Part shown: one piece after another, positions 26,949-64,000 of the stretch
How positions within the stretch are numbered: position 1 is the first letter of the stretch
How the letters are laid out: each line of letters starts with the position of its first letter
NCBI RefSeq assembly: GCF_032444005.1
Contig: NC_091288.1
Location: 215,574,001 to 215,638,000, forward strand
Origin: Ranitomeya imitator
Lineage: Eukaryota
Direction: 5' to 3'
DNA: 64,000 nucleotides
Notes under the pieces: model-generated
The model's input: the letters and a program-made list of their open reading frames with translations, nothing else
What the model was told of the DNA's origin: nothing
Database searches by the model: none
Program-made: the position numbers and the translations under genes

Positions 26949-35425
<8,477 letters not shown>

Positions 35426-36820: not shown

Positions 36821-37699
36821 CTTTTGCAAAGCTGAAATATTTGCTGGGAGTTCTGTTACTCGATCTGTAGACAATGTCGGCCATCCTCACTGCTCCTGCC
36901 GAGATTGATTTCCATGCATTCTGCTCCAGTCGCAACCAGAGCTGCACTCACAGTCCGACCTCCCATAGTGCACAACGGTTGAGACTTGCCCCTCGCCGAG
37001 ATCCCATGATACTTTGCGCTTCATACTACTAGGCGGTCTGTAAACACTAAACGGCGGGGTGCAGTGCAGGACGGGCGCCCTTAGCATTCTGATTGCAGCT
37101 CTGGCTGTGAGCGGAGCATAAGCCGGGATGCAGCTCAGGATCTGTACATACGAATGATAACGATGTGAACCTACCGCTCAGGGACCAATAGATGCAATGT
37201 AGGGATCAGCGGGGGCCGGTGACAGTAGATGATGGGGGGTGTAGTCCTCGGTCTGTGGAGCCGCCCCAGAGTTTACATAGCGGTTCCTGTTAGGGCCCCG
37301 CAGGCAGCGGACAGGTGGGGGTGGGGCAGGATCGCCGTGTGTCTCTTCCCTATTGAAAAGCTGAATTTTGGCTTTTTAATGAGAACTTTTTATCTTGTCT
37401 GAAATGAAATGAATGTAGAAATAATGGCGGCTCCTGTCTTTCTTTGGATCGGGGGAGGGGAAGATGGCACCCTAAAGAGAAAAATACACTGTTAATGAAC
37501 ACCGCCCAAAGTACTGGTGGTGGAGGGATACAGGGCCTTGCAATAGTCTTCATACCCTGTGCACATTTCCACGTTATATCCACAACCTTAAATGTATTAT
37601 TGTGATTTTCTGTGATACCGACTCGCGTATTTGTGACGTGAGGAGGAAATGATACTGTGGGTTTTCTAATTAATTTAGAAATATAAATCTTGAGAATTG

Positions 37700-38220
37700 G
37701 GCTGTGTATCTAACAGGTTTTCCTCCAGGATGGCCCTGTATTTAGCTCCATCCATCTTCCCATTACCTTTGACCAGCTTCCCTGCCCCTGCTGAAGAAAA
37801 GCCTCCCCACAGCAGGATGCTGCCTCCACTATGTGTGACGGTGTGGATGGTGTTTTCAGGGTGATGTGCAGTGTTAGTTTTCTGCCAACCATAGCCTTTT
37901 GTATTTAGCTGGAAAAGTTCTCCTTTGATCTTATCAGACCACAGCTCCTTTCTCCACATTGTACGGCTTTCAAAAGCGTCTTCTTGTCTCTTCCTTAAAG
38001 GCCAGATTTGTGGACTATACGACTAATCGTTGTCCTGTGGATCTCTGCAGGTCCTCCACAGTGACCATGGGCCTCTCGGTTCCTTCTCTAGTGCTCTCCT
38101 AGCTTTAGATGTCAGGTTAGGTGGACGGCCATGTCGTGGTAAGTCTGCAGTTCAGCCATACTCCTTCTGTTTTTGGCTGATGGATTGACCAGTGCTCGGT
38201 GAGATCTTTAAGAGCTTGGG
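37700..38220 (-). mobile_element. Tc1/mariner transposase fragment
   Basis: WRKELWSD..TAHHPENTIHTVTHSGGSILLWGGFSSAGAGKLV..MDGAKYRAILEENLL, a decayed DDE-domain segment. Confidence 0.85.
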
Positions 38221-41900: not shown

Positions 41901-44900
41901 TGCGGGGTCACACCAGCTGCAGACACTCACAGCTCCACCCTGCGGGGTCACACCGGCTGCAGACATTCACGGCTCCACCCTGCGGGATCACACCAGCTGC
42001 AGACAAGGCTCCACCCTGCGGGGTCACACCGGCTGCAGGCACAGCTCCACCCTGCGGGGTCACACCGGCTGCAGACATTCACAGCTCCACCCTGCGGGGT
42101 CACACCGGCTGCAGACATTCACAGCTCCACCCTGCGGGGTCACACCGGCTGCAGACATTCACAGCTCCACCCTGCGGGGTCACACCGGCTGCAGACACTC
42201 ACCTGGACAAGCTGACACCTGAAGACAAACCGAGCCCCGACAACCTGGGACTGAGGATTGGACTGGAGGCCGACCCTCGCCCACAGGATCTGCATATGCA
42301 GGGAGGTGGGGATGAGACAGGCGGAGGCGCAGTCACCCTGAGGACAGAGGAGCGGCATCAGGATCATACACTACTCCAGTCACAGCCAGAGCTGCAATGA
42401 CTGACATCACAGAGGTGCACTGTGGGAGATGCAGCATATTGCCATTGATGATGCCTGTTCTGGCACCACAAGTCTCGGCACACCCTGCCTGAATGCTGGC
42501 ACTTGTGGTTAGCAGCAGCTATGTATGAGGGGTCACCTGGAGGCTGCAGTTCTGGTAGATGATGGTCGTCCGGTCCCCATCCTGTCCTGCGGTGACGTTC
42601 CCGAGCATGGCCAGGCTCCCCGGCGCTTGTCCCCCGAGCAGCAGCTGGTAGGCCCGGGCATGGAGGTCGTCGCAGGTCTCCGCATCTCTCCCGCTGTGGA
42701 GTGACACTGGTTACTACTTCATTACACATCGGGTAAGACCATGAAGGATGGAGCACTCACCGCATCACACAGCCGCTCAGAGCGTTCACCCCAAACTGCA
42801 CGTCGCTGCGGCTGCAAGAGTCGCCCACCACAGACCGCAACATGGAGAGCTGCGGGAGTCAGGAGCAATAACGCCATGAGTACAGCGGGGGGCGCTGAAG
42901 AGCGGGGATGGGGCAGTGCCACATTGGGCAGGACTTGGGTACAAACATGGCACTGGGGTAATGAAGGATACGTGGCCGATATCACTCAGCACTGGGCGTC
43001 CAACCAGATATCCCGGGTTCCCGCTCCTCGACTGGGCAGGACCCTGCGACGCGGAAGCTGCCGGCTGTGGAAGAGAGAGAGACGTCACGGCGCACAGCAG
43101 AAGAGCAGCAAAGTGTCCAATACGGCCGTGATCTCCAACCTAAGGAACAACTACAAGTACCAGCATGACGGAGTGAACGGCTCTGTGTACGGCAAGCAGG
43201 ACGCACCTTGTACACCACAGAGAAGGACTGGCGGAGGAGGGCGCTCCCCGCGGATACATTGCTGAGGGTGAAGGATACGCTCACGTCCGTGATGCCCTGC
43301 GTGCCATTGTATAGCACCGTGTAGATCACCTGGCACAGAAATAGAGAAGGTCAGGACCCTCGGGGGCCACATAGCTGTGGACAGGTCAGGCTGACCATCG
43401 GCCTATAGTGGTGCAATCACCTGGGTAACCACGTTATCACAGACGTCTCCTCGCAGGACGGGGGTCTCAGTCACGTCACTGGTGATGGGGACCTGAGGAC
43501 AGAGCACAGAGCGGTGAGGAGGGTCTCAGGAGAACGACCCCCATCCTCCCAGCAGACCCTTCTCTGACCCTTATGGCCCCCTGATCAGTCGCATCCGCTG
43601 GGACCCTCAGTACAGCCGTGTCCTGGTGATAAAATGACGGCGACAAGGAGAGGTCGGTCTCACAGGCGGCGGCCACACTGCCGAGCGCACGGACACAGGA
43701 CGTCACGTCATTCTGCAGGAACTCTGGGAAATAAACACATAATTATACAAGGACAGGATACAAATCGAGTCTGACAGGAGCAGCAGCTGCAGGGAAAACA
43801 TGGAGGTAGATCCTCTCTGCAGCTGCACCGATCACTGCAGTGTGAGTGCGCTGTAATCACTGCTCTGCGCGCACTGCGGAGCAGGCGGTCAATCGATGTG
43901 CCGGGGAGTGATCACTGGAGGCAGCGGCTGCTGGGAGAATTCACCTTCATTTTCTTCCTGCAGCTGCTGCTCCGATAAATCAGCCGGACAGGATCTCACC
44001 GCTATCTATATCTACAGGTAATCTGGAGGTGACGGGTCCCTATAATTCGCGTGTCGTCCCTACCAGTCATATGAGGGTAGTCTCAGGTTGGGGGGATCAC
44101 ACGGAGGGGCCGTCTGTCCGGGACACGTCATCACTGGTGGTGACTGGCCCAGCGCTGCCCCTTACTGGCCACAAACTAGTAGCTTCCTGTCACTTATTAG
44201 CCACTTACTTGCCGGGTTGCCATCTGCACACAGACCCTGATTCCCCAGAGCCGCCGGCTGCCTCAATGCTCCCAACACCCCGGACGTGGAGACGGTGAGA
44301 ACGGGATCACCGGCCTAAGAGGAGAATATAGGAAATGAGAGCGCGCTCGCACCCCGAGATGAGGGCGCCCGGACTGCGGAGGCTCCAGACTCACCCGATA
44401 GAAGGCGGAGAACACAGAGGTGGTGGCCGAGGCCGGAAAGAAGGACGCCCCTCTGAACGGGCCACTGACGGCGGCGAAGTTCTCTGCATCCACCCTCCGA
44501 GGGGCCACAAAGTAATTCACCGAGGCTGAAATCAGAGAGAACGTCACAGCGGGCGGCTGATACCGGGGGCAGGAACCAGCGGGCGGCTGATACCGGGGGC
44601 AGGAACCAGCGGGCGGCTGATACCGGGAGATATCGGAGGGTGGGAACCAGCGGGCGGGAGCACCGGAGGGCTGGAACCAGCGGATGGCAAATACTGAAGG
44701 GCAGGAACCAGCGGGCGGCAAATACCGGAGAGCAGGAACTAGCGGGCGGCGGACACCGGAGGGCAGGAACCAATGGGCGGGAGATATCGGAGGCAGGAAC
44801 CAGCGGGTGGCGGATACCGGGAGACACCGGAGGGCAGGAACCAGCGGGCGGCGGATACCGGGAGATACGGGAGGGCAGGAACCAGCGGGCGGCTGATACC

Positions 44901-46767
44901 GGAGGGTGGGAAACAGCGGGCGCCGGACCGGGAGATACTGAGGGCAGGAACCAGCGGGCGGCGGATATCGGGGGCAGGAACCAGCGGGCGGCGGACACCG
45001 GAGGGCAGGAACCAATGGGCGGGAGATATCGGAGGCAGGAACCAGCGGGTGGCGGATACCGGGAGACACCGGAGGGCAGGAACCAGCGGGCGGCGGATAC
45101 CGGGAGATACGGGAGGGCAGGAACCAGCGGGCGGCGGATACCGGGAGATACGGGAGGGCAGGAACCAGCGGGCGGCTGATACCGGAGGGTAGGAAACAGC
45201 GGGCGCCGGACCGGGAGATACTGAGGGCAGGAACCAGCGGGCGGCGGATACCGGAGGAATGAACCAGCGGGCGGCGGATACCGGGGGCAGGAACCAGCTG
45301 GCGGCAGATACCGGAGGGCGGGAACCAGCGGGAGGCGGATACCGATGGCAGGAACCAGCGGGAGGCGGATACCGAGGGCAGGAATCAGCGGGAGGCAGAT
45401 ACCGGAGGGCGGGAAAGAGCGGGCGGCGGATACCGGAGGACGGGAACCAGCGGGAGGCGGATACCGAGGGCAGGAATCAGCGGGAGGCAGATACCGGAGG
45501 GCGGGAAACAGCGGGAGGCGGATACCGAGGGCAGGAATCAGCGGGAGGCGGATACCGGAGGGCGGGAAACAGCGGCGCTGGATCGGGAGATACTGGGGGC
45601 AGGAACCAGCGGCGCCGGACTGAGAGATAGCGGGGCAGGAACCAGCGGGCGGCTGATACCGGAGGCAGAACCAGCGGGCAGCTGATACCAGAGGGCGGGA
45701 ATCAGCGGGCAGCGGATACCGGAGACAGGAACCAGCGGGCGGCTGATACCGGGAAATACCGGAGGGCGGGAACCAGCGGGCGGCTTATACTGGGGGCAGG
45801 AACCAGCGGGAGGCGGATACCGGAATGCGGGAACCAGCGGGCGGCTGATACTGGGGGCAGGAACCAGCGGGAGGCGGATACTGGAATGCGGGAACCAGCG
45901 GGCGCCGGACCGGGTCCTTACCATCAGCCGAGGAGACGCAGAACAGCTGTGCGGGGGCCGCGCCCAGGAGGGCGGAGGGGTACGGGGTGTTATTTCGAAA
46001 GATCAGCCAGTTATAGAGACACGTCCAGCGCTCCGCCCTGCGGGAAATCACAGGTGACAGTGAGGACATCTACTGCTCTCTGGTATCAGCCAGGTGAAGT
46101 GATGAGGCTGACACTAGGCACAATGAATCTACTGCTTTGGTAGATTTGGGGCCGGGGCCTGTAATAAGTATCCAGGGGTCTCCTTACTTGGTGCTCCCGG
46201 GTAAACAGAAGGAGAAGACGTTTGTGGGGTCCCCGGACGCGCAGTCGGGGTCACAGCAGCAGTTAATGTCACAGCTCCCAGGCGACAGGTCACACGTGCA
46301 GATCGTCACACCTGACAGAACAGAAGAAACTTGCATTTACTTGGTATCTGCCACATCCCTTTAAGATGTGATGTCATGCACTTACCCTTTAAGAGATTGT
46401 CTTTTGTCTAGACTTTTGCTTAAAGATATGAAGTCAGACGGCTACTGCTTTCTCTTAAAGGGATAACATAAATCTTATATCTCCTCTTAAAGGGGGTGAG
46501 GTTATGAAGACACTATCCCTATAAGGGTGACGAACTCTACACACTATCCCTTTAACTTCAGGCATGGCGTCACGTAGACGCTTTCTCACTGACTGGACAC
46601 GAGGTGACATCACTCTTCCCTTAAACGTGACGTCACGCAGACACGCCTCCTTTGCAGGTGACGTCACTTTCTCCCCTGTCCCGCCTCTTACCGGTTGCTG
46701 CTCCCGTGCAGCAATGTGCGGCCATGAGAAGCAACAGAGCGCCCGGCGCTACCATCTCCGGAGCCAT
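38948..46767 (-). CDS. TCTN3: Tectonic family member 3 (ciliary transition zone), 13 exons, ~488 aa
   Basis: Exons (high-low): 46767-46692 (signal peptide [23 protein letters not shown]), 46311-46188 ([20 protein letters not shown]), 46037-45922, 44525-44395, 44314-44209, 43723-43569, 43492-43421, 43329-43207, 43064-42972 ([12 protein letters not shown]), 42849-42761 ([11 protein letters not shown]), 42693-42537, 42337-42203, 39037-38948. All are GT-AG and phase-consistent (1467 nt). AATAAA at 38858-38853. [16 protein letters not shown] and [13 protein letters not shown] favour TCTN3 over TCTN1/2. Confidence 0.9.
39066..42200. repeat. 36 bp minisatellite (CTCCACCCTGCGGGGTCACACCGGCTGCAGACACGG), ~85 copies, TCTN3 last intron
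   Basis: Period 36 measured at 40201 and 40237; 40 bp variants carry an extra TTCA/CTCA. Confidence 0.96.
44547..45905. repeat. ~30 bp CpG-rich minisatellite (GCGGGCGGCTGATACCGGGGGCAGGAACCA), TCTN3 intron 3
   Basis: Degenerate tandem units with an internal ~240 bp block duplication (about 44745 and 44987). Confidence 0.9.
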
Positions 46768-47718: not shown

Positions 47719-50700
47719 TCACAGTCTGTGGGTTTCATAGGAAATGTAGAAGTCTCCATCTTGCAAAAGAGAAAAAAAAGTGAGAAAAAGCAGGAAAAAG
47801 TGTTAGGCCGGGGTCACACTAGTCTGTAATACGGACATGCGGGAAAAAATCTCACCATATGGATGAGAAAAAAACGCATCCTGGCATCGCACACGGATGA
47901 GGTACGGATTACAATGACAGCAGAAAGTGGGACTATATACAATGCCCATATAATACCGCCATACCGCGCCCAATTACTAGCACCAGTGCACAAAAGAATC
48001 TATATACAATGACCTAATAAAACCGCCATATGCTAATACCATAAAGTACACAATAGTATCAATATACAATTACCATGTTAGGCTACGTTCATATTTGCGT
48101 TGTTGGGCGCAGCGTCGTCGACGCATACCGATGCATGCGTCATGCGCCCCTATCTTTAACATGGGGGGCGCAAGGACATGCGCCGGTATGCGTTGTATTG
48201 CGTTTTACGACGCATGCGTCATATTGACGCACAGACAGGGCGCAGAGGACGCTACTGCGTTTTCCCTGCGCCGAAATTCCTGCTCTGTACGATCTTATGA
48301 CAACGCATGCGTGGCAAAACGCTGCGTTGTGTACATGCGTTGTTGGTTGCTGCGCCCAACAATGCAAATGTGAACGTTACCTAATACCACCAAGTAATAG
48401 CACCATAGCAGCACAGTTATTTGAGCAGTGTATGGCGGTATTATTTGGCTAGCAGCACAGTCATTAGAGCAGTGTATAGTGGTATTATTTGCGTACTAGC
48501 ACAATCGTTAGAGCAGTGTATGGCTGTATTATTTGGGTAGTAGCACAGTCGTTAGAGCAGTGTATGGCGGTATTATTTGGGTGGTAGCAGTCGTTAGAGC
48601 AGTGTATGGCGGTATTATTTGGGTAGTAGCACAGTCGTTAGAGCAGTGCATGGCGGTATTATTTGGGATGTAGCACAGTTGTTAGTGCAGTGTATGGCGG
48701 TATTATTTGGGTAGTAGCACAGTTGTTAGTGCAGTGTATGGCGGTATTATTTGGGTAGTAGCACAGTCGTTAGAGCAGTGTATGGCGGAATTATTTGGGT
48801 AGTAACAGAGTCGTTAGAGCAGTGTATGGTGGTATTATTTGGGTAGTAGCAGTTATTTGAGCAGTGTATGGGGGTAATAATTTGGGTAGTAGGACAGTTA
48901 TTTGTGCAGTGTATAGTGGTATTATTTGAGTAGTAGCAGTTGATAAGGCAGTGCATAGTGGTATTATTTGGGTAGTAGCACAGTCGTTAAAGCAGTGTAT
49001 GGCGGTATTATTTGGGTAGTAGCACAGTTCTTAGAGCAGTGTATGGAGGTATTATTTGGGTAGTAGTACATTTGTCAGACCAGTGTATGGCGGTATTATT
49101 TGGGTAGTAGCACAGTTGTTAGAGCAGTATATGGCAGTATTATTTGGGTAGTAGCACAGTTGTTAGAGCAGTGTATGGCGGTATTATTTGGGTAGTAGCA
49201 CAGTTGTTAGAGCAGTATATGGCGGTATTATTTGGGTAGTAGCACAGTTGTTAGAGCAGTGTATGGCGGTATTATTTGGGTAGTAGCACAGTTGTTAGAG
49301 CAGTATATGGCAGTATTATTTGGGTAGTAGCACAGTTGTTAGAGCAGTGTATGGCGGTATTATTTGGGTAGTAGCACAGTTGTTAGAGCAGTATATGGCG
49401 GTATTATTTGGGTAGTAGCACAGTTGTTAGAGCAGTGTATGGCGGTATTATTTGGGTAGTAGCACAGTTGTTAGAGCAGTATATGGCAGTATTATTTGAG
49501 TAGTAGCACAGTTGTTAGAGCAGTGTATGGCGGTATTATTTGGCTAGCAGCACAGTCATTAGAGCAGTGTATAGTGGTATTATTTGCGTACTAGCACAAT
49601 CGTTAGAGCAGTGTATGGCTGTATTATTTGGGTAGTAGCACAGTCGTTAGAGCAGTGTATGGCGGTATTATTTGGGTGGTAGCAGTCGTTAGAGCAGTGT
49701 ATGGCGGTATTATTTGGGTAGTAGCACAGTCGTTAGAGCAGTGCATGGCGGTATTATTTGGGATGTAGCACAGTTGTTAGTGCAGTGTATGGCGGTATTA
49801 TTTGGGTAGTAGCACAGTTGTTAGTGCAGTGTATGGCGGTATTATTTGGGTAGTAGCACAGTCGTTAGAGCAGTGTATGGCGGAATTATTTGGGTAGTAA
49901 CAGAGTCGTTAGAGCAGTGTATGGTGGTATTATTTGGGTAGTAGCAGTTATTTGAGCAGTGTATAGTGGTATTTGGTATTAGTAGCACAGTTGTTGGAGC
50001 AGTGTATGGGGGTAATAATTTGGGTAGTAGGACAGTTATTTGTGCAGTGTATAGTGGTATTATTTGAGTAGTAGCAGTTGATAAGGCAGTGCATAGTGGT
50101 ATTATTTGGGTAGTAGCACAGTCGTTAAAGCAGTGTATGGCGGTATTATTTGGGTAGTAGCACAGTTCTTAGAGCAGTGTATGGAGGTATTATTTGGGTA
50201 GTAGTACATTTGTCAGACCAGTGTATGGCGGTATTATTTGGGTAGTAGCACAGTTGTTAGAGCAGTATATGGCAGTATTATTTGGGTAGTAGCACAGTTG
50301 TTAGAGCAGTGTATGGCGGTATTATTTGGGTAGTAGCACAGTTGTTAGAGCAGTATATGGCGGTATTATTTGGGTAGTAGCACAGTTGTTAGAGCAGTGT
50401 ATGGCGGTATTATTTGGGTAGTAGCACAGTTGTTAGAGCAGTATATGGCGGTATTATTTGGGTAGTAGCACAGTTGTTAGAGCAGTGTATGGCGTATTTG
50501 GGTAGAAGCACAGTTGTTAGAGCAGTGTATGGCGGTATTATTTAGGTGGTACATGGTGTGATTTCTTATCCCACATACCTTGTTCCTGTAGCTCCATGGA
50601 CACTTTCTGTGGCTGATGGGTAGTGGAGTCCGCCAGATTTGCCGTCCTTCCCTCATTCTGGTCCTCAGAGAATTTGTGTGGGGGGCGAACACAGTCTGGT

Positions 50701-53700
50701 TGGGAGTACAGAGGAGTCTCCATGTTTTCATAGGAATCTGCATCTGCTATTAAGAGTGGACATAGCTGGAGTAGCGGTGATACATCTGGTATGGGGCGGT
50801 AATATTTATTACGTGGGCGGCTGCTCTGATTGGTGGATGTGATCACACTCATCACATGATCTCTTCTCCGACCTTTGGTCACAGAGTCTCCCCGGCTTTA
50901 CAGTATCACACAGCCCCGCCCCTGCTGTCTCCTCCCCTTTTCTTCCTGACTCCGCCCATCGGCGGTTACCACAGAGCAGTGCATTGTGGGAGCTGGTCTG
51001 TAATACCACATGTCTGACAGCAGGTGTCGCTACACTGGGGCGATGGCTTCTCACCTTCGTCTCGTGTCGCCCCCTCGTCTGCAGGACCCTCGGCCTTCGC
51101 CCGGACACAGATGGATCCTTTCATGTCTTCATACGACTGGGACCCTGAGACACGAGAAGAACATGGATGAAGTGGCCCCATTCTTATATCACAGCATCTC
51201 CCACCCAAGCCCATGTCCTGCTGGTTCCTGGGCCGCACCCTCAGAGCCATCTTTAATTTCTTCATTGGTGTTCTCATAGCAGTCGCCATCTAGAAAACAG
51301 AAGAGGAGGCGTCAGCCATGTTACCTGCACCCGGGACAGAGCACGGACTTCACCCCCCGTCCCACCGTCACTTATAACAGTTTAATATAAACTTATACAT
51401 TCACATTTGCTTTACTTTTTTTTATATTTTAGTTTTTTATGTAAATATTGTATTACCCTAAACCTGACACTAGTACTATCCTTAGTCAGCCCTAATCCTT
51501 GTCCTAGCCCTAACCAAAATCCTAATCCTAGCTTAAATCCTACAGTTATCCCTAGTCCTAGCCTTCATCAGAGGCCTAGCTCGTGGACTAATACTAACCC
51601 TAGTCTTAATCCTAACCCTACTACTAACTCTGTAGTCAGAACCCTAGCTCCAGTCCTAATTCTAATCCTAATCAGAACCCTAACCCCAGTCGTAATTCTA
51701 GTCCTATCCCTAACCAAAGTCCTAATCCCAAATCTAGTCCTAACTTTAACCCTAGTCCTTGTAATCGTAGTCCTTACTCTATCCCTAGACTTAATCCTAA
51801 CTCTACTACTAACACCGTAGTCAGAACCCTAACTCCAGTCCAAATTCTAATCCTAATGCTAACTCTAATCACCCTAATCCCAGTCCTAATCATAGCCCTG
51901 TCCTAATCCTAAATCTAGTCCTAACTTTAAACCCTAGTCCTAATTTTAACCCTGGTCCTTACTCTAACCCTAGTCTTAATCCTAACCCTGGTACATAAAC
52001 TGTAGTCATAACCATAACCTTAGTCCCAACTCTAACCCTAACTCTAATTCTAACCCTACTCCTAAATCTAACACTAATCCTAGCCCTAAATCTAACCCTA
52101 ATCAGAACCCTAACCCCAGTCCTAATTCTAGTCCTAGCCCTAACCAAAGACCTAATCATAAATCAAGTCCTACTTTTAACCCTAGTCCACATAATCCTGA
52201 CTGTGTGGCGTCAGCTGATCCCTAATCGCCGTGGCATGCGCTTAGGGATCAGCTGACGCCGCACAGTCTGAAGAAGGCGGAGGGAGATGAGTGACAGGCG
52301 AAGATATGCACAGCGCATGGCCATGAATCCCAGCCCCGCAGTGTGAATAAATCAGAAGACAGGGTCGTCCATCTGGCTAATCGTTACTCGGACGCGTCCG
52401 CTCTTCGCCAGTCATTACACTGGCTGCCCATTCATTACAGGATACAATTCAAAGTACTTGTTCTCACCCACAAAGCTCTCCACAGTGCGGCCCCCCTTAC
52501 ATCTCCTCCCTCATTTCTGTCTATCGGACTAACCGACCGCTGCGCTCTGCAAATGACTTTCGACTAACCTCTGCAGTAATCCATACCTCCCACTCCCGAC
52601 TCCAAGACTTCTCCCGTGCTGCGCCAATCCTCTGGAATGCTCTACCCCAAGATATTAGGACCATCCACAATTTGCATAGTTTTAGGCGCTCGCTCAAAAC
52701 ACATTTGTTCAGAGCGGCCTACCACGTTCCCTAATCAAAGTCATTTTATGTTTGTGTGTGTGTGTAGCCCATTCACTATCTCCATCTATCCCCCACCCCC
52801 TGAAGATGGTCGGACCCTCATTGTAAATACATCATTGTAAATACACACCTGTACTTTGTATCTCCCCCACCTCATTGTAGATTGTAAGCTCTCACGAGCA
52901 GGGGCGGCTTATTGTGCTTTATTATTGTATTGTTAACGTTGTTACTTATGACTTTTGTGTTCGAAACTGTTAAACTGTAAAGCGCTGCGGAATATGTCGG
53001 CGCTATATAAATAAAGATTATTATTATTATTATTATTAATGGTGTTGCAGCCTCTATGTCCTTTCAGTAAAGGTGAAGTGTATATAGTGACAGACATGTG
53101 ACACTTAGATCGCACACAGGTGGACGTTTTGTCACTACGCATGGGACTTATGAAGAGAATTGCTTCATCCCAACAGGAGTGAATACATATGCAAATGCCA
53201 ATTTTTAGTTATTTCATCCCATAAATTTAATTTATGCCGGTATTTTTTTCTAATTTCACCAACTTCGACTACTTAGTGCTGATGCATCGCACACAAATCA
53301 GGTTACAAAAATATTTACACACAGGTTGTTATATAACAAAATAGCTAAAAAAAACCCAAGGGGTGTGAATACTTTTGCAAGCCATTGTACTTCTAACACT
53401 AACTGTCAGTAATATAACCCCTGTCCTAATCCTAGTACTAGCCCTAGTCCTAACTCCACTCAAACCCTACCCCAATCTTAATAATAGTCAAAAGTCCTAA
53501 TCCTAAATATAGTCCTAACTTTAACCCTAGTCCTAACACTAGCCCTGAATAAGTCTAGTCCTAAATCTAACTCTAGTCTTAATCCCAACCCTACGTCTAA
53601 CACTAACTATGGTCAGAACCCTAACCACAGTCCTAGCGCTAAACCTAGTCCTAACCCTAATCAGAGCCCTATCCCCAGTCCTAACTCTAGGACTATAACA

Positions 53701-56700
53701 TGCAGATTATTATATACGTAGGGATTTTGTATTGTCTTCTTTACAGCTCACCCATTAGGTCACTGTCTATTCTCTCACAAAATTACAAGTGAGCGTTGAG
53801 GCGGGGAGCTGCGAAAAAGCACGGTGCAGCTTCTGTCATCTCAGTTGCTGCCTACGCAGAGCGCAGGAGTCAAGATGAGTTTGTAATTGGTTGCTGAGCT
53901 CTGCATAGCAAATCTCACGTAATTATACCGAGTGTTACCTATGCAGTCCTCATGGTCGTCCCGATCCTTGGTGGGGTCCTCATAGCAGCCGCTTGCTGGT
54001 GAGAGAGGGTATTACACGTGTATTTGTGAGGGGGCAAAAATTATGAAGGAAGAGCGGAGGAAGGAGCAAAAATCATAAGTAAACCGTTCTCACCGACGGA
54101 CGCCTGATCCCCTCCTTCAGCCATCGGCTCCAAATAGGAATCACCGCCTGGAAATGACATCATAAAGCAATTAAAGGGGAAGTCCGGGGATCGGAACGCG
54201 TCAGGGAGTTGTGCTGCCGAGAATATAGCTCACAGAGGAATTTTTCTCAGTCACTGACAACAAGCAGAGGTCTTGAAAATAGTTTGGAATTAAAATGGAG
54301 TTGGAAAGTTGCAGAACCTTTGCAGCGCTCACGTCCCTTTAATGCGGCTGGTTGTTATAATGGTTATAATGGTTTCTAACTGAACTCTGGAGACGATCAG
54401 AGAAATGTTTTTGAGGCAAAGAAATTGGGGAAGCGTGACACAAAAACAAGAGCAGAAAAGAGAAAAAAAAAAGTCGTTTCCTCTTCTGTTCTGACTGTTC
54501 GGGGAGGATGGCGCTCAAATAACTTCACTGATGAAATTACTGATACTGGGGGGGGGGAGACAGAGAAATGGAGGACGGGGGGGGGGTCCAAGGTCTCATA
54601 AGTGACTCTAGACATGGAGACAACCGAGTCGGTGGATCCCGTGGAACAGAAATGGAGACTGAGAGGAGCACGACAAAACTGAGGCATGTGCTTCACTGTC
54701 ATGGAGGGGCACAAAGAAGCCCCTCAGCCTACCCTTCAGGAACATGGCAGCAGACCCTTCTTCCCACCTGGACCTCTGCCGTTTGTCCACCATTCACCGG
54801 TCATTCCGCACTCGGCTCCACTAGAGATCCCCTTATCGCTAACCCCCTTAGAACCAGACGACGGGGAGCAACTTGAGAATGAGGCCTGTAAACATTAACT
54901 GCCCTGGACCCCCCGGGACATTACCATTACCAGATAACTGCCCCGGACCCCCCGGGACATTACCATTACCAGATAACTGCCCCGGACCCCCCGGGACATT
55001 ACCATTACCAGATAACTGCCCTGGACCCCCCAGGGACATTACCATTACCAGATAACTGCCCCGGACCCCCCGGGACATTACCATTACCAGATAACGGCCC
55101 TGGACCCCCCGGGACATTACCATTACCAGATAACTGCCCTGAACCCCCCAGGACATTACCATTACCAGATAACTGCCCCGGACCCCCCGGGACATTACCA
55201 TTACCAGATAACTGCCCTGGACCCCCCGGGACATTACCATTACCAGATAACGGCCCTGGACCCCCCGGGACATTACCATTACCAGATAACTGCCCTGGAC
55301 CCCCCGGGACATTACCATTACCAGATAACTGCCCTGGACCCCCTGGGACATTACCATTACCAGATAACTGCCCTGGACCCCCCGGGACATTACCATTACC
55401 AGATAACTGCCCTGGACCTCTAGAGCTTTCCTGAGTTACTATTTAGGCATTATATGGCGGTGTTATTGTGATCCTGATTTAGTTCTTTTTTAGGGGACTT
55501 GATGGCATTATTACTTGGGCACCATGTGGAGGTATGTGGTGTGGGCACTATTAAGACATTAATATCTGTGTTAAAGGTATGCATCTAATTCACATTATAC
55601 ATACTGGTATGATTAAATGACCCAATAATGAGGAGCCCCATGTTAATACTCCCAGAATGACATTTTCTATTTAACCGCCATCTGGCTGCCGTCTGTTATC
55701 TGTGATTTCCATTTATCTAACATAATCTGCTCAATTTAACATGAAGCTGAGAATGTATAAAAGGCCTGAAGAACCAATCAGGAGGAGAACAGAGGTGAGG
55801 CCTGAAGAATCAGACAGGAGGAGACCAGAGGTGACGCCTGAAGAACTAATCAGGAGGAGAACAGAGGTGAGGCCTGAAGAAGCGGTCAGGAGGAGACCAG
55901 AGGCGAGCCCTGAAGAACCAGACAGGAGGAGACCAATGATGAGGCCTGAAGAACCAGACAGAAGGAGACCAGAGGTGAGGCCTGAAGAACTGGACAGGAG
56001 GAGACCAATGATGAGGCCTGAAGAACCAGAGGGGGAGACCAGTGATGAGCCCTGAAGAACCAGATAGGAGGAGACCAGTGGTGAGGACTGAAGAAACGGA
56101 CAGGAGGAGACCAGAGGTGAGACTTGATTAATCGGACAGGAGGAGAACAGAGGTGAGGCCTGAAGAAGCGGACAGGAGGAGCCCAGAGGCAAGGCCTGAA
56201 GAACCGGACAGGTGGAGAACAGATGTGAGGTCTGAAGAACTGAACAGGAGGAAACCAGAAGTGAGGCCTGAAGAACCGGACAGAAGGAGACCAGATGTGA
56301 GGTCTGAAGAATTTACAGGAGAGACAAGAGGTGAGGCCTGAAGAACTGGACAGGAGGAGGTCAGAGATGAGGCCTGAAGAACCAGACAGGAGGAGACCAG
56401 ATGTGAGGTCTGAAGAATTTACAGGAGGAGACAGGAGGTGAGGCCTGAAAAACTGGACAGGAGGAGCCCAGAGGCAAGGCCTGAAGAACCGGACAGGTGG
56501 AGACCAGATGTGAGGTCTGAAGAACTGAACAGGAGGAGCCCAGATGTGAGGTCTGAAGAATTTACAGGAGGAGGCAAGAGGTGAGGCCTGAAGAACTGGA
56601 CAGGAGGAGACCAGATGTGAGGTCTGAAGAATTTACAGGAGGAGGCAAGAGGTGAGGCCTGAAGAACTGGACAGGAGGAGACCAGATGTGAGGTCTGAAG

Positions 56701-59700
56701 AATTTACAGGAGGAGACCAGATGTGAGGTCTGAAGAACTGAACAGGAGGAGCCCAGATGTGAAGTCTGAAGAATTTACAGGAGGAGGCAAGAGGTGAGGC
56801 CTGAAGAACTGAACAGGAGGAGACCAGATGTGAGGTCTGAAGAATTTACAGGAGGAGGTCAGAGGTGAGGCCTGAAAAACTGGACAGGAGGAGGTCAGAG
56901 GTGAGGCCTGAAGAAGTCACCGGCGCTCTGTAAATCTCCCAGTAACACATCGCCTGCTGCTCAGGCGTTCGAGCGCTACCCAGGATCCCGGACATGTAAT
57001 GAGACCGCGCTGCACTCACCCAGAGACAGGAAGGAGCTCTTGTCTGAGTAACAATCATTACCAACAACTTTCGATGGAGACACGTTCTGGTAGGTGAAGT
57101 CCTGATCCTTGTGGGCGACGTCTGATCGGTGGTGGCACAAAGAATAAAAAGATGATGGTAATTATTAGTATTGTTGGTGTCATCATCATAGACACGAAGA
57201 AAAAGAGGATGTGAACTAAAAAGTGGGAAATTACAAAAAAAGAAAAATAGGAAGAAAGGAAAAAAGGAGAAAACGAAGACAGGAAATAAAAAAAGGAAAA
57301 TACAAAGAGATAAAGAAGGCAGGAAATAAAAAAAGGAGAACGCAAAGAAGGAAAAACACGAGAAAAACAAGATGAGAAAAAAAAGTAAAATGCAAAGAAA
57401 AGAAGAAAGAAAATGTAAAAAAAAAGGAATGTGAAATATGTAGACGGAAAAAAGGGAGAAGAGAACGAGGAGGGATTGATTGGGAGCAGTCGTGGGGTCT
57501 CCCAGCACGTGGCGGTACCTGTCTGGGGGCTGATGGAGTCTGCGTAGAGGTTCCTGGCGGCTGAGCTCATCTTGAAGAAACTGATGAGGAGAGAAAATTA
57601 CTTTGTGGGTGATAGATAAACCCGCTGACATCACAGAGAGAGGACGTGTCCCAGAGATGGCGCCGTACAAGGGGCACAATCCGGTGCCCCCTCCCCTGTG
57701 TCCGGAGCACCTCACGTGGTCGTCCTGCCCCCACACAGTAAGAGAAGCTCAATATTTCTATTACAGGGGAGAGGAAATAAAGGGAGATCCGGAGATGGCG
57801 GATGCAGCGGCACCACTGATAGCTGCAGGATCTCGTACGTGGCAGCGGCACCGCTGATAGCTGCAGGGTCTCGTACATGGCAGCGGCACCGCTGATAGCT
57901 GCAGGGTCTCGTACGTGGCAGCGGCACCGCTGATAGCTGCAGGGTCTCATACGTGGCAGCGGCACCGCTGATAGCTGCAGGGTCTCGTACGTGGCAGCGG
58001 CACCACTGATAGCTGCAGGATCTCGTACGTGGCAGCGGCGCCGCTGATAGCTGCAGGGTCTCATACGTGGCAGCGGCACCGCTGATAGCTGCAGGGTCTC
58101 GTACATGGCAGCGGCACTGCTGATAGCTGCAGGGTCTCGTACGTGGCAGCGGCACCGCTGATAGCTGCAGGGTCTCGTACGTGGCAGCGGCACCGCTGAT
58201 AGCTGCAGGGTCTCATACGTGGCAGCGGCACCGCTGATAGCTGCAGGGTCTCGTACGTGGCAGCGGCACCGCTGATAGCTGCAGGGTCTCGTACGTGGCA
58301 GCAGCACCGCTGATAGCTGCAGGGTCTCGTACGTGGCAGCGGCACCGCTGATAGCTGCATGGTCTTGTACGTGGCAGCGGCACCACTGATAGCTGCAGGG
58401 TCTCGTACGTGGCAGCGGCACCGCTGATAGCTGCATGGTCTCGTACGTGGCAGCGGCGCCGCTGATAGCTGCAGGGTCTTGTACGTGGCAGCGGCACTCA
58501 CCTGTTCTTGGCGCGTCTCCTCGCTCTCCTTCCTGTAATAAGACATGGAGTATAATGGTCACTCGCATTTCCTTGGATTGTTAGCGGTAAATCTGACTCT
58601 GTGAATCGCCACCATTACTGCGCCACTAAGCACCATATTCGGCAGCCATATTGGTTGTCACAAAAGCAATTCACTCATATTTCTGAATAGTATCTCTTAG
58701 GCGATGTTCACACTGAGATTTTTTTTTAGTAATTTTGTTTTAAGTCAGATTGTCGCCCAAAAAAACACTTGGAAAACTCTCATTCATTTCTTTGGGAAAT
58801 CCTCTTTTCTGGTCAGATGAGGAGGTTTTAAGGTTTTTTTTTTTACCTGAAGAGATGTGGAAAAAAACAAAACAGATGTTAAAAAAAATGGTCTGGGAAG
58901 TGGAATCTGATGGAATCCACTCCATACTGGGCACTATCCAATCAGAAGGCTGCAAAAAAAAAAAAAACGAAAACAAAAATTTTCCAGAAATGAAAAAAAT
59001 TGCTTCAAAAATTCCTTAAAAAAGAGCGCGTAAAAGACTCGTCATTTCAAAACGCCTCAAAAAACCTCCGTGTGAACACGGCCTTAGAATACGCTACAGC
59101 AGTGATCACATTCATCTGACACAGACTTGTTACAGGAAAACGCTCCGATACACTGCAACGAACCCCACACTTTTGCAAGCAAGAGATGATGGAGATTGAT
59201 TTTGAGGCCCGTGAGCGCGGACATTGTGTCCGTTCACTGACAACAAGCAGAGATTTTGAAACTGGAAGCACAAAGCCTCCAAGAAAGTGACGTGTGGGAG
59301 TTTTCTGCTGCGGGGTCATGATAACATATCGATTCCCGGGTACGGTGACACGCACTGTGTCTTATGCTTACGAAGCCGCCCGCGAGCAGCAGGCCGAGCA
59401 GCGCAGAGGACGATGCCACCGCCATGACGATCCAGTATCGCTCCTTCAGGAACAGCTGCCATCCTGCCAGGAGGAAACAAGACAAGTCAGCGAGCTGCGG
59501 GGTCTCCACCGTCGTATCCCATATGTGTGGTTTATGGGAATCACCACATCAGGACTCCATCATGGCGCCCTGGTCGGCCCCCACGGCCATCCCTGAACCA
59601 CACGGCAGCCCGTCCGTCCAGTTATCTCACCTGTCGCGTTGCCGTGCGGAGGCGACCATCGACATGTCGCGTTTAACATCTTTGTCATATTGCTACCCCC

Positions 59701-59888
59701 AGAATCCTCGTCAATGATGGAGGTGATGATGAACGATGGCCCCTTCCTCATCACCTTGACGCTCAGCTGAGGCCCCGCTCTTTGCACCATGGCAATCACC
59801 TCGTCACCTCTGGACCATTGCACCCTGGTCCAGGTCCTCGGGGCGCGGCAGGCGATCCGCTGCTCCTCCACATCATCCAGCTCACTAT
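47719..59888 (-). CDS. CD19: B-lymphocyte antigen CD19 orthologue (Ig-like exon, TM exon, tyrosine-motif cytoplasmic tail)
   Basis: Exons (high-low): 59888-59631 (Ig-like, C..W), 59463-59356 (TM YWIVMAVASSSALLGLLLAGGFV), 58532-58502 (RRARRRAKN), 57580-57519 (FFKM..LYADS), 57121-57020 (YQNV), 54147-54094 (YLEP), 51289-51239 (YENT), 51144-51055 (GSQSYEDMKG), 50743-50579 (DADSYENM), 47759-47719. Splice phases are consistent. GSQSYEDM and DADSYENM match human CD19 (GSQSYEDMRG, DADSYENMD). AATAAA signals at about 47180-47196. Confidence 0.85.
48081..48381. mobile_element. PIF/Harbinger-type MITE (~300 bp) in the last CD19 intron
   Basis: Imperfect TIR GGCTACGTTCAYATTTGCRTTGTTGGGCGCAGC, flanked by TTA and TAA. 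Confidence 0.75.
48410..50545. repeat. 44 bp minisatellite (AGCACAGTTGTTAGAGCAGTGTATGGCGGTATTATTTGGGTAGT), ~48 copies
   Basis: Direct tandem units in the last CD19 intron. Confidence 0.96.
52345..53037 (+). mobile_element. L2-type LINE 3' end
   Basis: RYSDASALRQSLHWLPIHYRIQFK..., frameshifted into ...SRAAPILWNALP..SFRRSLKTHLF; ends AATAAAG(ATT)n. Confidence 0.85.
53040..53389 (+). mobile_element. Tc1-like right-end fragment
   Basis: Ends GGGGTGTGAATACTTTTGCAAGCCATTG-TA, with an inner repeat GTGAATACATATGCAA, typical of Tc1 IR/DR ends. Confidence 0.6.
54885..55420. repeat. 39 bp minisatellite (CCCCGGGACATTACCATTACCAGATAACTGCCCTGGACC), ~14 copies
   Basis: Period 39 measured at 55201 and 55240. 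Confidence 0.95.
55760..56915. repeat. ~36 bp purine-rich minisatellite (GAGGTGAGGCCTGAAGAACCAGACAGGAGGAGACCA)
   Basis: Degenerate tandem units within a CD19 intron. Confidence 0.9.
57800..58497. repeat. 38 bp minisatellite (GTACGTGGCAGCGGCACCGCTGATAGCTGCAGGGTCTC), ~18 copies
   Basis: Period 38 measured at 57901 and 57939; each unit has an internal inverted repeat (CAGCGG/CCGCTG). Confidence 0.95.
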
Positions 59889-60269: not shown

Positions 60270-60365
60270 GGAGGATTAGCCCCTGTCAGGGGATAGAGGA
60301 AAATGGAGGGGACAGAGGAGTCTGGAGGAGGACAGAGGAGGACAGATGAGTGTGGAGGAGGAAGA

Positions 60366-63300
60366 CAGAGGAGTCTGGAGGAGGAAGACAGGAGTCTGGA
60401 GGAGGAAGACAGGAGTCTGGAGGAGGAAGACAGGAGTCTGGAGGAGGAAGACAGGAGTCTGGAGGAGGAAGACAGGAGTCTGGAGGAGGAAGACAGGAGT
60501 CTGGAGGAGGAAGACAGGAGTCTGGAGGAGGAAGACAGGAGTCTGGAGGAGGAAGACAGGAGTCTGGAGGAGGAAGACAGGAGTCTGGAGGAGGAAGACA
60601 GGAGTCTGGAGGAGGAAGACAGGAGTCTGGAGGAGGAAGACAGGAGTCTGGAGGAGGAAGACAGGAGTCTGGAGGAGGAAGACAGGAGTCTGGAGGAGGA
60701 AGACAGGAGTCTGGAGGAGGAAGACAGGAGTCTGGAGGAGGAAGACAGGAGTCTGGAGGAGGAAGACAGGAGTCTGGAGGAGGAAGACAGGAGTCTGGAG
60801 GAGGAAGACAGGAGTCTGGAGGAGGAAGACAGGAGTCTGGAGGAGGAAGACAGGAGTCTGGAGGAGGAAGACAGGAGTCTGGAGGAGGAAGACAGGAGTC
60901 TGGAGGAGGAAGACAGGAGTCTGGAGGAGGAAGACAGGAGTCTGGAGGAGGAAGACAGGAGTCTGGAGGAGGAAGACAGGAGTCTGGAGGAGGAAGACAG
61001 GAGTCTGGAGGAGGAAGACAGGAGTCTGGAGGAGGAAGACAGGAGTCTGGAGGAGGAAGACAGGAGTCTGGAGGAGGAAGACAGGAGTCTGGAGGAGGAA
61101 GACAGGAGTCTGGAGGAGGAAGACAGGAGTCTGGAGGAGGAAGACAGGAGTCTGGAGGAGGAAGACAGGAGTCTGGAGGAGGAAGACAGGAGTCTGGAGG
61201 AGGAAGACAGGAGTCTGGAGGAGGAAGACAGGAGTCTGGAGGAGGAAGACAGGAGTCTGGAGGAGGAAGACAGGAGTCTGGAGGAGGAAGACAGGAGTCT
61301 GGAGGAGGAAGACAGGAGTCTGGAGGAGGAAGACAGGAGTCTGGAGGAGGAAGACAGGAGTCTGGAGGAGGAAGACAGGAGTCTGGAGGAGGAAGACAGG
61401 AGTCTGGAGGAGGAAGACAGGAGTCTGGAGGAGGAAGACAGGAGTCTGGAGGAGGAAGACAGGAGTCTGGAGGAGGAAGACAGGAGTCTGGAGGAGGAAG
61501 ACAGGAGTCTGGAGGAGGAAGACAGGAGTCTGGAGGAGGAAGACAGGAGTCTGGAGGAGGAAGACAGGAGTCTGGAGGAGGAAGACAGGAGTCTGGAGGA
61601 GGAAGACAGGAGTCTGGAGGAGGAAGACAGGAGTCTGGAGGAGGAAGACAGGAGTCTGGAGGAGGAAGACAGGAGTCTGGAGGAGGAAGACAGGAGTCTG
61701 GAGGAGGAAGACAGGAGTCTGGAGGAGGAAGACAGGAGTCTGGAGGAGGAAGACAGGAGTCTGGAGGAGGAAGACAGGAGTCTGGAGGAGGAAGACAGGA
61801 GTCTGGAGGAGGAAGACAGGAGTCTGGAGGAGGAAGACAGGAGTCTGGAGGAGGAAGACAGGAGTCTGGAGGAGGAAGACAGGAGTCTGGAGGAGGAAGA
61901 CAGGAGTCTGGAGGAGGAAGACAGGAGTCTGGAGGAGGAAGACAGGAGTCTGGAGGAGGAAGACAGGAGTCTGGAGGAGGAAGACAGGAGTCTGGAGGAG
62001 GAAGACAGGAGTCTGGAGGAGGAAGACAGGAGTCTGGAGGAGGAAGACAGGAGTCTGGAGGAGGAAGACAGGAGTCTGGAGGAGGAAGACAGGAGTCTGG
62101 AGGAGGAAGACAGGAGTCTGGAGGAGGAAGACAGGAGTCTGGAGGAGGAAGACAGGAGTCTGGAGGAGGAAGACAGGAGTCTGGAGGAGGAAGACAGGAG
62201 TCTGGAGGAGGAAGACAGGAGTCTGGAGGAGGAAGACAGGAGTCTGGAGGAGGAAGACAGGAGTCTGGAGGAGGAAGACAGGAGTCTGGAGGAGGAAGAC
62301 AGGAGTCTGGAGGAGGAAGACAGGAGTCTGGAGGAGGAAGACAGGAGTCTGGAGGAGGAAGACAGGAGTCTGGAGGAGGAAGACAGGAGTCTGGAGGAGG
62401 AAGACAGGAGTCTGGAGGAGGAAGACAGGAGTCTGGAGGAGGAAGACAGGAGTCTGGAGGAGGAAGACAGGAGTCTGGAGGAGGAAGACAGGAGTCTGGA
62501 GGAGGAAGACAGGAGTCTGGAGGAGGAAGACAGGAGTCTGGAGGAGGAAGACAGGAGTCTGGAGGAGGAAGACAGGAGTCTGGAGGAGGAAGACAGGAGT
62601 CTGGAGGAGGAAGACAGGAGTCTGGAGGAGGAAGACAGGAGTCTGGAGGAGGAAGACAGGAGTCTGGAGGAGGAAGACAGGAGTCTGGAGGAGGAAGACA
62701 GGAGTCTGGAGGAGGAAGACAGGAGTCTGGAGGAGGAAGACAGGAGTCTGGAGGAGGAAGACAGGAGTCTGGAGGAGGAAGACAGGAGTCTGGAGGAGGA
62801 AGACAGGAGTCTGGAGGAGGAAGACAGGAGTCTGGAGGAGGAAGACAGGAGTCTGGAGGAGGAAGACAGGAGTCTGGAGGAGGAAGACAGGAGTCTGGAG
62901 GAGGAAGACAGGAGTCTGGAGGAGGAAGACAGGAGTCTGGAGGAGGAAGACAGGAGTCTGGAGGAGGAAGACAGGAGTCTGGAGGAGGAAGACAGGAGTC
63001 TGGAGGAGGAAGACAGGAGTCTGGAGGAGGAAGACAGGAGTCTGGAGGAGGAAGACAGGAGTCTGGAGGAGGAAGACAGGAGTCTGGAGGAGGAAGACAG
63101 GAGTCTGGAGGAGGAAGACAGGAGTCTGGAGGAGGAAGACAGGAGTCTGGAGGAGGAAGACAGGAGTCTGGAGGAGGAAGACAGGAGTCTGGAGGAGGAA
63201 GACAGGAGTCTGGAGGAGGAAGACAGGAGTCTGGAGGAGGAAGACAGGAGTCTGGAGGAGGAAGACAGGAGTCTGGAGGAGGAAGACAGGAGTCTGGAGG

Positions 63301-64000
63301 AGGAAGACAGGAGTCTGGAGGAGGAAGACAGGAGTCTGGAGGAGGAAGACAGGAGTCTGGAGGAGGAAGACAGGAGTCTGGAGGAGGAAGACAGGAGTCT
63401 GGAGGAGGAAGACAGGAGTCTGGAGGAGGAAGACAGGAGTCTGGAGGAGGAAGACAGGAGTCTGGAGGAGGAAGACAGGAGTCTGGAGGAGGAAGACAGG
63501 AGTCTGGAGGAGGAAGACAGGAGTCTGGAGGAGGAAGACAGGAGTCTGGAGGAGGAAGACAGGAGTCTGGAGGAGGAAGACAGGAGTCTGGAGGAGGAAG
63601 ACAGGAGTCTGGAGGAGGAAGACAGGAGTCTGGAGGAGGAAGACAGGAGTCTGGAGGAGGAAGACAGGAGTCTGGAGGAGGAAGACAGGAGTCTGGAGGA
63701 GGAAGACAGGAGTCTGGAGGAGGAAGACAGGAGTCTGGAGGAGGAAGACAGGAGTCTGGAGGAGGAAGACAGGAGTCTGGAGGAAGACAGGAGTCTGGAG
63801 GAAGACAGGAGTCTGGAGGAAGACAGGAGTCTGGAGGAAGACAGGAGTCTGGAGGAAGACAGGAGTCTGGAGGAAGACAGGAGTCTGGAGGAAGACAGGA
63901 GTCTGGAGGAAGACAGGAGTCTGGAGGAAGACAGGAGTCTGGAGGAAGACAGGAGTCTGGAGGAAGACAGGAGTCTGGAGGAAGACAGGAGTCTGGAGGA
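60366..64000. repeat. Near-perfect 21 bp satellite (GGAGTCTGGAGGAGGAAGACA, ~160 copies) switching to an 18 bp unit at about 63772
   Basis: Period 21 measured at 60432 and 60453; no variant unit seen over about 3.4 kb; continues off the window edge. Confidence 0.97.

Follow-up and report, generated by a model that had tools for sequence, protein, structure and literature searches.

What gene lies on the minus strand at 47719-59888 of the 64,000-nucleotide stretch of Ranitomeya imitator DNA analyzed here (the window), and is it already known? A sequence-only reading had taken it for a frog orthologue of CD19 and had suggested that it may be unannotated or mis-modelled. We assign this region, with high confidence, to the 3' four-fifths of R. 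imitator cd19, which encodes the Ig-like lobe next to the membrane, the membrane-spanning segment, and the full cytoplasmic tail.

Annotation and exon structure

The joined window translation (338 residues) is, in a residue-by-residue comparison, identical to residues 106-443 of RefSeq XP_069590940.1, titled "B-lymphocyte antigen CD19 isoform X2 [Ranitomeya imitator]". This agreement is far beyond chance. RefSeq holds three isoforms of R. imitator CD19 (XP_069590938.1, XP_069590940.1, and XP_069590941.1), and the sole differences in X1 and X3 are one alternative acceptor and one alternative donor, both of which are seen in the window DNA; splice variants aside, the window translation is 100% identical to X3. 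Protein CAJ0934183.1, from a second assembly, differs at 12 positions, and a second R. imitator record bears only the title 'unnamed protein product'. Thus, the suspicion of a missing or faulty annotation did not hold. R. imitator cd19 is already known under its correct name, and the reading was sound but no discovery because RefSeq already lists the gene as CD19.

On the minus strand we find 11 exons, all with a canonical AG acceptor and GT donor, in a single open frame that closes at a TGA (47721-47719), the start coordinate that the sequence-only reading had given. They consist of one Ig-like exon, one transmembrane exon, one basic stop-transfer micro-exon, and eight tail exons, as follows (nearest to the 5' end of the gene first, with the evidence in brackets):

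59631..59888, minus strand: exon of the membrane-proximal Ig-like lobe, 258 nt, phase 1-1, residues ~106-191 (splice sites, frame, RefSeq X2 match)
59356..59463, minus strand: exon of the W..FL..RYW motif and transmembrane helix, 108 nt, phase 1-1, with a weaker GTGCGT donor (frame, RefSeq match)
58502..58532, minus strand: basic stop-transfer micro-exon (RRARRRAKN), 31 nt, phase 1-2 (splice sites, frame, RefSeq match)
57519..57580, minus strand: tail exon with FFK and LYAD, 62 nt, phase 2-1 (splice sites, frame, RefSeq match)
57020..57121, minus strand: tail exon with YQNV and CYSD, 102 nt, phase 1-1 (splice sites, frame, RefSeq match)
54094..54147, minus strand: tail exon with SYLEP, 54 nt, phase 1-1 (lower end from RNA joint 53995/54094, acceptor 54147 from sequence and RefSeq)
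53939..53995, minus strand: tail exon with CYEDP, 57 nt, phase 1-1 (both ends from RNA joints; RefSeq match)
51239..51289, minus strand: tail exon with CYENT, 51 nt, phase 1-1 (RNA joints 51289/53939 and 51143/51238, the latter 'cut +1'; RefSeq match)
51055..51144, minus strand: tail exon with GSQSYEDM, the first YxxM site, 90 nt, phase 1-1 (RNA joints, alignment)
50579..50743, minus strand: tail exon with DADSYENM, the second YxxM site, 165 nt, phase 1-1 (RNA joint 50743/51055, loose end at 50579)
47719..47759, minus strand: start of the last exon, with the C-terminal DGDFYISYETHRL, the TGA, and the 3' UTR below it (RNA contig end; frame)

The sequence-only reading had placed the Ig-like exon, transmembrane helix, basic stop-transfer, and LYAD, YQNV, YLEP, YENT, YEDM, and YENM motifs correctly on this strand. 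Its exon model was essentially right, but the count is 11 rather than ten because it had not listed the YEDP exon at 53939-53995. Nine of the 11 exons begin in phase 1. Of the 10 internal exons, seven have symmetric phase 1, and the 31-nt exon (1-2) is complemented by the 62-nt exon (2-1). A strong GTAAGC donor after the transmembrane helix was considered and rejected: it breaks the frame, and RefSeq uses the weaker GTGCGT, 13 nt further on. The alternative sites lie in the tail. In the main isoform the YQNV exon extends to 57020, while a donor at 57062 yields isoform X3, which is 14 residues shorter, and a NAGNAG acceptor at 50746 adds one Ala to give isoform X1.

The predicted junctions appear in RNA. 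Contigs from four RNA-labelled runs (label 'RNA?') give five of the 10 junctions exactly: four as joints (50743/51055, 51143/51238, 51289/53939, and 53995/54094), all bounded by CT..AC, or GT..AG when read along the minus strand, and the fifth as a contig whose loose end at 50579 runs exactly into 47759-47730. Spliced contigs are present in several such runs from three studies; the runs carry no tissue or cell-type label. For the five 5' junctions, the support is the exact identity of the joined translation to the RefSeq protein. We additionally observed that some RNA contigs read through the SYLEP exon acceptor (54147) unspliced. One contig has a loose end of 22 nt at 54227 with no match anywhere in the window, which was taken as an assembly chimera or unplaced variant.

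With a span of 20.8 kb in the public assembly, the gene extends ~4.5 kb past the window at its 5' end. Out there, past a 21-bp satellite, are the exons for residues 1-105 (the signal peptide and first Ig-like lobe). The sequence-only reading had treated the single Ig-like exon as the whole ectodomain; the exon itself stands, but the rest of the ectodomain lies outside the window. The satellites, for which no strand is assigned, are:

60335..64000: 21-bp satellite, 176 copies, 99% alike, in the intron between the Ig exon and the upstream out-of-window exons
57804-58497: 38-bp intronic satellite, beginning a few bases past the donor of the 31-nt micro-exon
55762-56915: 36-bp intronic satellite
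54896-55418: 39-bp intronic satellite
48406..50551: 44-bp satellite, taking up most of the last intron

Introns filled by five satellites, together with the unspliced read-through at the YLEP acceptor, might suggest a decaying or unexpressed copy whose exon-like remnants are scattered among repeats. We regard this as highly improbable: all 11 exons keep an intact frame, spliced contigs come from several RNA-labelled runs in three studies, and the tail motifs are conserved in more than 20 species. It is just as improbable that the gene is real and the public model wrong. A gene model can easily miss exons as short as 31-62 nt or a donor as weak as GTGCGT, and a second R. imitator record is only an 'unnamed protein product', but our independent reconstruction from sequence and RNA joints equals isoform X2 residue for residue, and the differences in X1 and X3 are accounted for by alternative sites present in the DNA. 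We conclude that this is an intact gene, that it is transcribed and its transcripts spliced, and that it encodes exactly the CD19 protein given in RefSeq.

Relationship to mammalian CD19

The protein has a type I membrane layout in its exon translations (Ig-like ectodomain, one transmembrane helix, basic stop-transfer), followed by a long acidic cytoplasmic tail with many tyrosines, the last two sites being the YxxM motifs YEDM and then YENM. Human CD19 (UniProt P15391; PDB 7jic, 7urv) shares this type I layout. Its Ig-like ectodomain has two lobes, as that of the frog protein may, and both proteins have a motif rich in tryptophan just before the transmembrane helix, a basic stop-transfer, and a long acidic tail from many small exons in which the tyrosine run ends YEDM then YENM. 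The two also differ. R. imitator CD19 is shorter (444 residues versus 556 in human), is only ~17% identical to the human protein in the Foldseek alignment, lacks the middle non-Ig segment of human CD19, carries YLEP where human has YEEP, and ends in a C-terminus unlike the human one (FYISYE..L, conserved in anurans). The frog gene is also larger, at ~21 kb with satellite-filled introns compared with 7.4 kb in human.

Searches with structure models and profiles point to the same family. With the full-length model, Foldseek against 550,129 reviewed (Swiss-Prot) proteins returned human, mouse, and marmoset CD19 as its top three matches (E ~1e-6), a result to which the transmembrane helix and tail probably contribute most. 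The frog-only profile A2 found human CD19 (7jic_A) as its best match in the PDB (E 3.1e-6), with a narrow lead over DSCAM (8.5e-6); this match covers the F strand, the transmembrane helix, and then the basic stretch, in the region of exon 59356..59463. Caecilian CD19 also matched 7jic_A best in the PDB (E 5.3e-7, runner-up 3e-3).

Large-database searches with the full Anomaloglossus protein, an amphibian profile, and the tail of the window protein returned amphibians only and no amniote CD19; the tail search, which covered 5.8 billion sequences, found no amniote protein.

The ectodomain is harder to place. In the AF2 model, residues 24-181 are beta-rich and a helix occupies 200-237; the ectodomain model has a pTM of 0.76. 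A VIA wide search with this model gave human CD19 chains 7urv_C and 7jic_A as the only PDB representatives at Z>=5, at a Z of 5.5 that is below the tool's safe level (8), with alignment lengths of 120-121 residues versus ~75 for ordinary Ig domains. Foldseek against the PDB gave no CD19 and no significant match with either the full or the ectodomain model, Foldseek with the ectodomain alone found nothing, and a second look by VIA at Foldseek's list yielded generic Ig C-domains only (Z ~4). With the single frog protein, a Pfam search returned no family and a PDB sequence search no match at E up to 10, which bears out the earlier claim of a fast-diverging ectodomain. The Ig-like exon (59631..59888) lacks the usual YxC and is 64% identical to Anomaloglossus CD19 (phmmer).

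Gene order was the other argument put forward, in the form of synteny with SH2B1. That claim was not supported within the window, where a search of all six frames for SH2-domain motifs came back empty; what holds instead, in two other frogs, is a RABEP2-like neighbour. In Spea bombifrons and Xenopus laevis, a gene with PF09311 Rab5-bind (RABEP2-like) lies upstream of CD19, head-to-head, and the human order is RABEP2, CD19 (PMC11354020). The upstream neighbour in Ranitomeya, outside the window, has a 693-aa product with no Pfam match on record. The neighbours of cd19 here are a gene of the tectonic family, one for a PP1 catalytic subunit, and MTO1. The order CD19-tectonic-PP1 is common to Ranitomeya and Spea, and these 3' neighbours (tectonic, PP1) are unlike those at human 16p11.2.

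Could amphibian "CD19" instead be a different Ig-superfamily receptor or adaptor with YxxM and acidic tyrosine motifs, misnamed throughout the class by automatic annotation? NCBI names are assigned automatically, the frog protein has no direct significant sequence match to any amniote protein, and the ectodomain fold match is weak. We nevertheless consider this very unlikely, because four independent lines lead to CD19 and to no other family. The top three reviewed proteins by fold model are all CD19. Human CD19 is the best PDB sequence match for both the frog-only profile and caecilian CD19, and it gives the best whole-ectodomain fold matches. Two frogs have a RABEP2-like gene beside CD19. 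The motif order also agrees with that of human CD19: a basic stretch, FFK, Y.NV, acidic Y-E-x-P/T repeats, SQSYEDM, and DADSYENM. The identification as the frog CD19 orthologue is supported, and the link to mammalian CD19 is remote but consistent.

Constraint and proposed function of the tail

NCBI applies the CD19 name in more than 20 anuran species, including Xenopus tropicalis, and in two caecilians, and the named matches in our amphibian searches are all CD19 or 'uncharacterized', with no other family. X. tropicalis CD19 (XP_002941751.3) and caecilian CD19 share the same tail motifs and are alignable throughout, at 37% and 28% identity to the window protein. Both carry an extra middle Ig domain, recognised by Pfam, that Ranitomeya and the other aligned anurans lack. 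A five-residue deletion in the Ranitomeya ectodomain may have removed the usual F-strand cysteines.

The tail encoded in the window carries LYAD, YQNV, YLEP, YEDP, YENT, YEDM, and YENM, with 11 tyrosines, including Y350 (YEDM) and Y381 (YENM), as against nine in the human tail, of which Y391, Y482, and Y513 are key (PMC3520838). The YEDM and YENM sites are invariant in 19 of 19 aligned amphibian sequences, and GSQSYEDM.G and D.DSYENM are invariant throughout frogs and caecilians in the amphibian alignment. The tail is the constrained part, while the ectodomain has drifted almost beyond recognition.

By analogy with mammalian CD19, the frog protein would serve at the B-cell surface as the membrane-bound signalling subunit of a co-receptor, and Src-family kinases would phosphorylate its tail tyrosines upon antigen-receptor engagement. 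Motif conservation predicts that PI3K would then dock, through its p85 subunit, on the two invariant YxxM sites, and Vav on YLEP, the counterpart of human YEEP; together these would lower the activation threshold, as in mammals. An association of frog CD19 with CD81 and CD21 we infer only from motif conservation.

More tentatively, and with the odds somewhat against it, anuran CD19 may be a stripped-down co-receptor, with a two-lobed ectodomain of ~180 residues that sequence models do not recognise, a near-fixed tyrosine tail, and, in Ranitomeya, F-strand cysteines that have been lost. If so, the ancestral, constrained job of CD19 would be PI3K recruitment and not ectodomain-mediated partner binding.

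We found no dedicated paper on amphibian CD19, and a cross-species single-cell study wrote of CD19 that it 'began to emerge in mouse' (PMC10770119). The practical value of the locus is as a reminder that amphibians have expressed CD19; therefore, cd19 could serve as a frog B-cell marker once cell specificity is checked, and its proposed use as a candidate pan-B-cell marker is a reasonable idea. With a near-fixed tail beside a fast-drifting ectodomain, the gene also illustrates neatly which part of this co-receptor selection acts on.

Exon structure and annotation of cd19

A six-frame scan located LYAD, YQNV, YLEP, YENT, YEDM, and YENM, all of the motifs named in the sequence-only reading, each in a short open stretch of the minus strand, together with an additional motif, YEDP, on the same strand. 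Reading of the DNA around these motifs gave 11 exons with canonical AG acceptors and GT donors.

Exons of cd19 in the window
59888-59631, minus strand: Ig-like lobe, 258 nt
59463-59356, minus strand: Trp-rich membrane-proximal motif and transmembrane helix, 108 nt
58532-58502, minus strand: basic stop-transfer, 31 nt
57580-57519, minus strand: FFK, LYAD, 62 nt
57121-57020, minus strand: YQNV, CYSD, 102 nt
54147-54094, minus strand: YLEP, 54 nt
53995-53939, minus strand: YEDP, 57 nt
51289-51239, minus strand: YENT, 51 nt
51144-51055, minus strand: YEDM, 90 nt
50743-50579, minus strand: YENM, 165 nt
47759-47719, minus strand: C-terminus and TGA, 41 nt

When joined, the 11 exons encode 338 residues in a single open frame that stops at 47719, the start coordinate of the sequence-only reading, which had correctly proposed an exon chain in one frame but counted ten exons, leaving the YEDP exon (53995-53939) unlisted. 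Seven of the 10 internal exons are phase-1 symmetric, and the 31-nt and 62-nt exons make a 1-2/2-1 pair. The introns are taken up by five tandem satellites. A 38-bp satellite at 57804-58497 (18 copies, 94% alike) starts a few bases beyond the splice donor of the stop-transfer micro-exon (58502-58532, 31 nt), which is in use despite this neighbor. In assembly GCA_032444005.1 the gene covers 20.8 kb, which places its 5′ end ∼4.5 kb outside the window, beyond a 21-bp satellite; residues 1-105 (signal peptide and first Ig-like lobe) are encoded there.

Among 1.84 billion representatives, phmmer with the Ig exon found a 452-residue protein (64% identity) that NCBI names B-lymphocyte antigen CD19 of Anomaloglossus baeobatrachus. 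Used as a query, it returned 22 proteins, the named ones all amphibian and labeled CD19 or "uncharacterized." R. imitator RefSeq CD19 has three isoform records (XP_069590938.1, XP_069590940.1, and XP_069590941.1). The window translation equals residues 106-443 of isoform X2 (XP_069590940.1) without a mismatch, and isoform X3 is 100% identical to it save two splice differences. Isoform X3 has an alternative donor at 57062 and isoform X1 a NAGNAG acceptor at 50746. Thus, the window derives from R. imitator and the gene is already correctly annotated, and the suggestion that it might be unannotated or mis-modeled does not hold, while the identification as CD19 was right and agrees with the RefSeq name. 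The gene is known under that name in R. imitator and more than 20 other amphibians. Of the clear orthologues, Bufo gargarizans P0023 and Mixophyes fleayi P0005, P0012, and P0013 (our protein handles) are only "uncharacterized protein" at NCBI; a second R. imitator record is an "unnamed protein product," with the UniProt name "Ig-like domain-containing protein."

Transcription and splicing

About half of the words sampled from one stretch, itself roughly half exonic, were present in RNA-labeled sequencing runs. Contigs of three of the four RNA-labeled runs compared carried four joints (50743|51055, 51143|51238, 51289|53939, and 53995|54094), every one of them GT..AG when read on the minus strand, and a loose contig end at 50579 ran on exactly into 47759-47730. 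In run X6, one contig of 1305 nt had 735 nt upstream of the YEDM piece, compared to 724 nt for the summed upstream window exons; these lengths fit a full spliced mRNA, by arithmetic rather than direct observation. For the Ig-plus-transmembrane stretch, 0.23 to 0.42 of words were present in runs from the same studies.

In three RNA-labeled runs, contigs extended unspliced past the YLEP acceptor and into intron sequence upstream of it (54148-54260 and beyond), one of them (799 nt) extending past the upper end of the stretch compared; a fourth stopped at 54227 with 22 nt matching nothing in the window. This read-through probably reflects pre-mRNA or a retained intron, although it may also mark an alternative start. 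Separately, summed RNA-run contig depth was very high (hundreds to 13,000) at 52360-53000, in the intron that separates the YENT exon from the YEDP exon, most likely reflecting a dispersed repeat that does not belong to cd19 and has transcribed copies elsewhere.

Relationship to mammalian CD19

Since the CD19 name is assigned automatically, we put orthology with mammalian CD19 to the test. The frog protein alone gave no Pfam family and no PDB match at E up to 10, and a search of a 5.8-billion-sequence collection with its tail found no amniote protein and reached caecilians only at E 2-3. A frog-only profile covering the last Ig lobe together with the transmembrane helix and the juxtamembrane region had as its best PDB match human CD19 (7jic_A, E 3.1e-6), narrowly ahead of generic Ig matches; the aligned segment starts in the F strand, crosses the Trp motif and the transmembrane helix, and ends in the basic stretch. 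Caecilian CD19 matched 7jic_A at 5.3e-7 (second-best 3e-3). Across 19 aligned amphibian sequences, GSQSYEDM.G and D.DSYENM are invariant, as are the FFK, Y.N, and SY..P sites. The human gene has 15 exons, and its tail nine tyrosines, of which Y391, Y482, and Y513 are key (PMC3520838).

The full protein was modeled with AlphaFold, giving pLDDT ∼70-93 for the ectodomain and helix and a disordered tail; Foldseek with this model against 550,129 reviewed proteins ranked human, mouse, and marmoset CD19 as the top three (E ∼1e-6). The ectodomain modeled alone (pTM 0.76) gave no Foldseek match. In a search independent of Foldseek, this model reached Z of at least 5 only for human CD19 chains 7urv_C and 7jic_A (Z 5.5, a modest score), which align over ∼120 residues across both lobes, compared to ∼75 for ordinary Ig domains. 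The evidence from profiles, models, and the alignment is indirect and consistent with amphibian "CD19" being CD19.

The sequence-only reading had also invoked synteny with SH2B1, but no SH2B1-like sequence was found within the window, where the downstream neighbors are as follows.

Genes downstream of cd19
38948-46767, minus strand (same as cd19): tectonic-family gene, PF07773 in the public gene list
33905-35400, plus strand: PP1 catalytic subunit (Metallophos)
11497-16669, plus strand: MTO1 (GIDA)

TCTN1 and PPP1CC presumably lie together on human 12q24. In Spea bombifrons, CD19, tectonic, and PP1 have identical order and orientation, with a Rab5-bind gene head-to-head upstream of CD19; in Xenopus laevis, the corresponding position is occupied by a gene for a Rab5-bind product of 590 residues. 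The human order is ATP2A1, RABEP2, CD19, NFATC2IP (PMC11354020), so orthology is supported on the 5′ side by these other frogs. The RABEP2-side synteny is not visible inside the window, and SH2B1 is not involved here. The window also holds a long open reverse-transcriptase frame (RVT_1, 671 aa; 20005-22017, plus strand), an inverted partial copy of it, and Tc1-type transposase remains, one within MTO1; the copy and remains are at 31155-31880 (minus), 13891-14316 (plus), and 37678-38022 (minus).

Ectodomain variation and predicted signaling

In Dendrobates, Phyllobates, and Anomaloglossus, two F-strand cysteines sit in a five-residue segment (∼168-172, window 59690-59710) that CD19 of the two Ranitomeya species lacks, leaving their membrane-proximal lobe without the canonical F-strand cysteine. 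A downstream N-x-T-C is kept in each of the 10 neobatrachian sequences from Ranitomeya to Bufo, and also in Mixophyes, Pseudophryne, and Lithobates. Xenopus tropicalis and two caecilians (P0032, P0033, and P0034) have an extra middle Ig domain (alignment columns 197-290), whereas the other 16 anuran sequences aligned, including Ascaphus, Bombina, and Discoglossus, do not. Either the domain was lost repeatedly, or its exon was overlooked in many of the gene models.

The cd19 gene is intact and spliced, and it encodes a conserved type I membrane protein whose acidic, tyrosine-rich tail is disordered. By analogy with mammalian CD19, antigen-receptor engagement would lead to phosphorylation of this tail, whereupon pYEDM and pYENM would dock PI3K p85 and the YLEP site would dock Vav.
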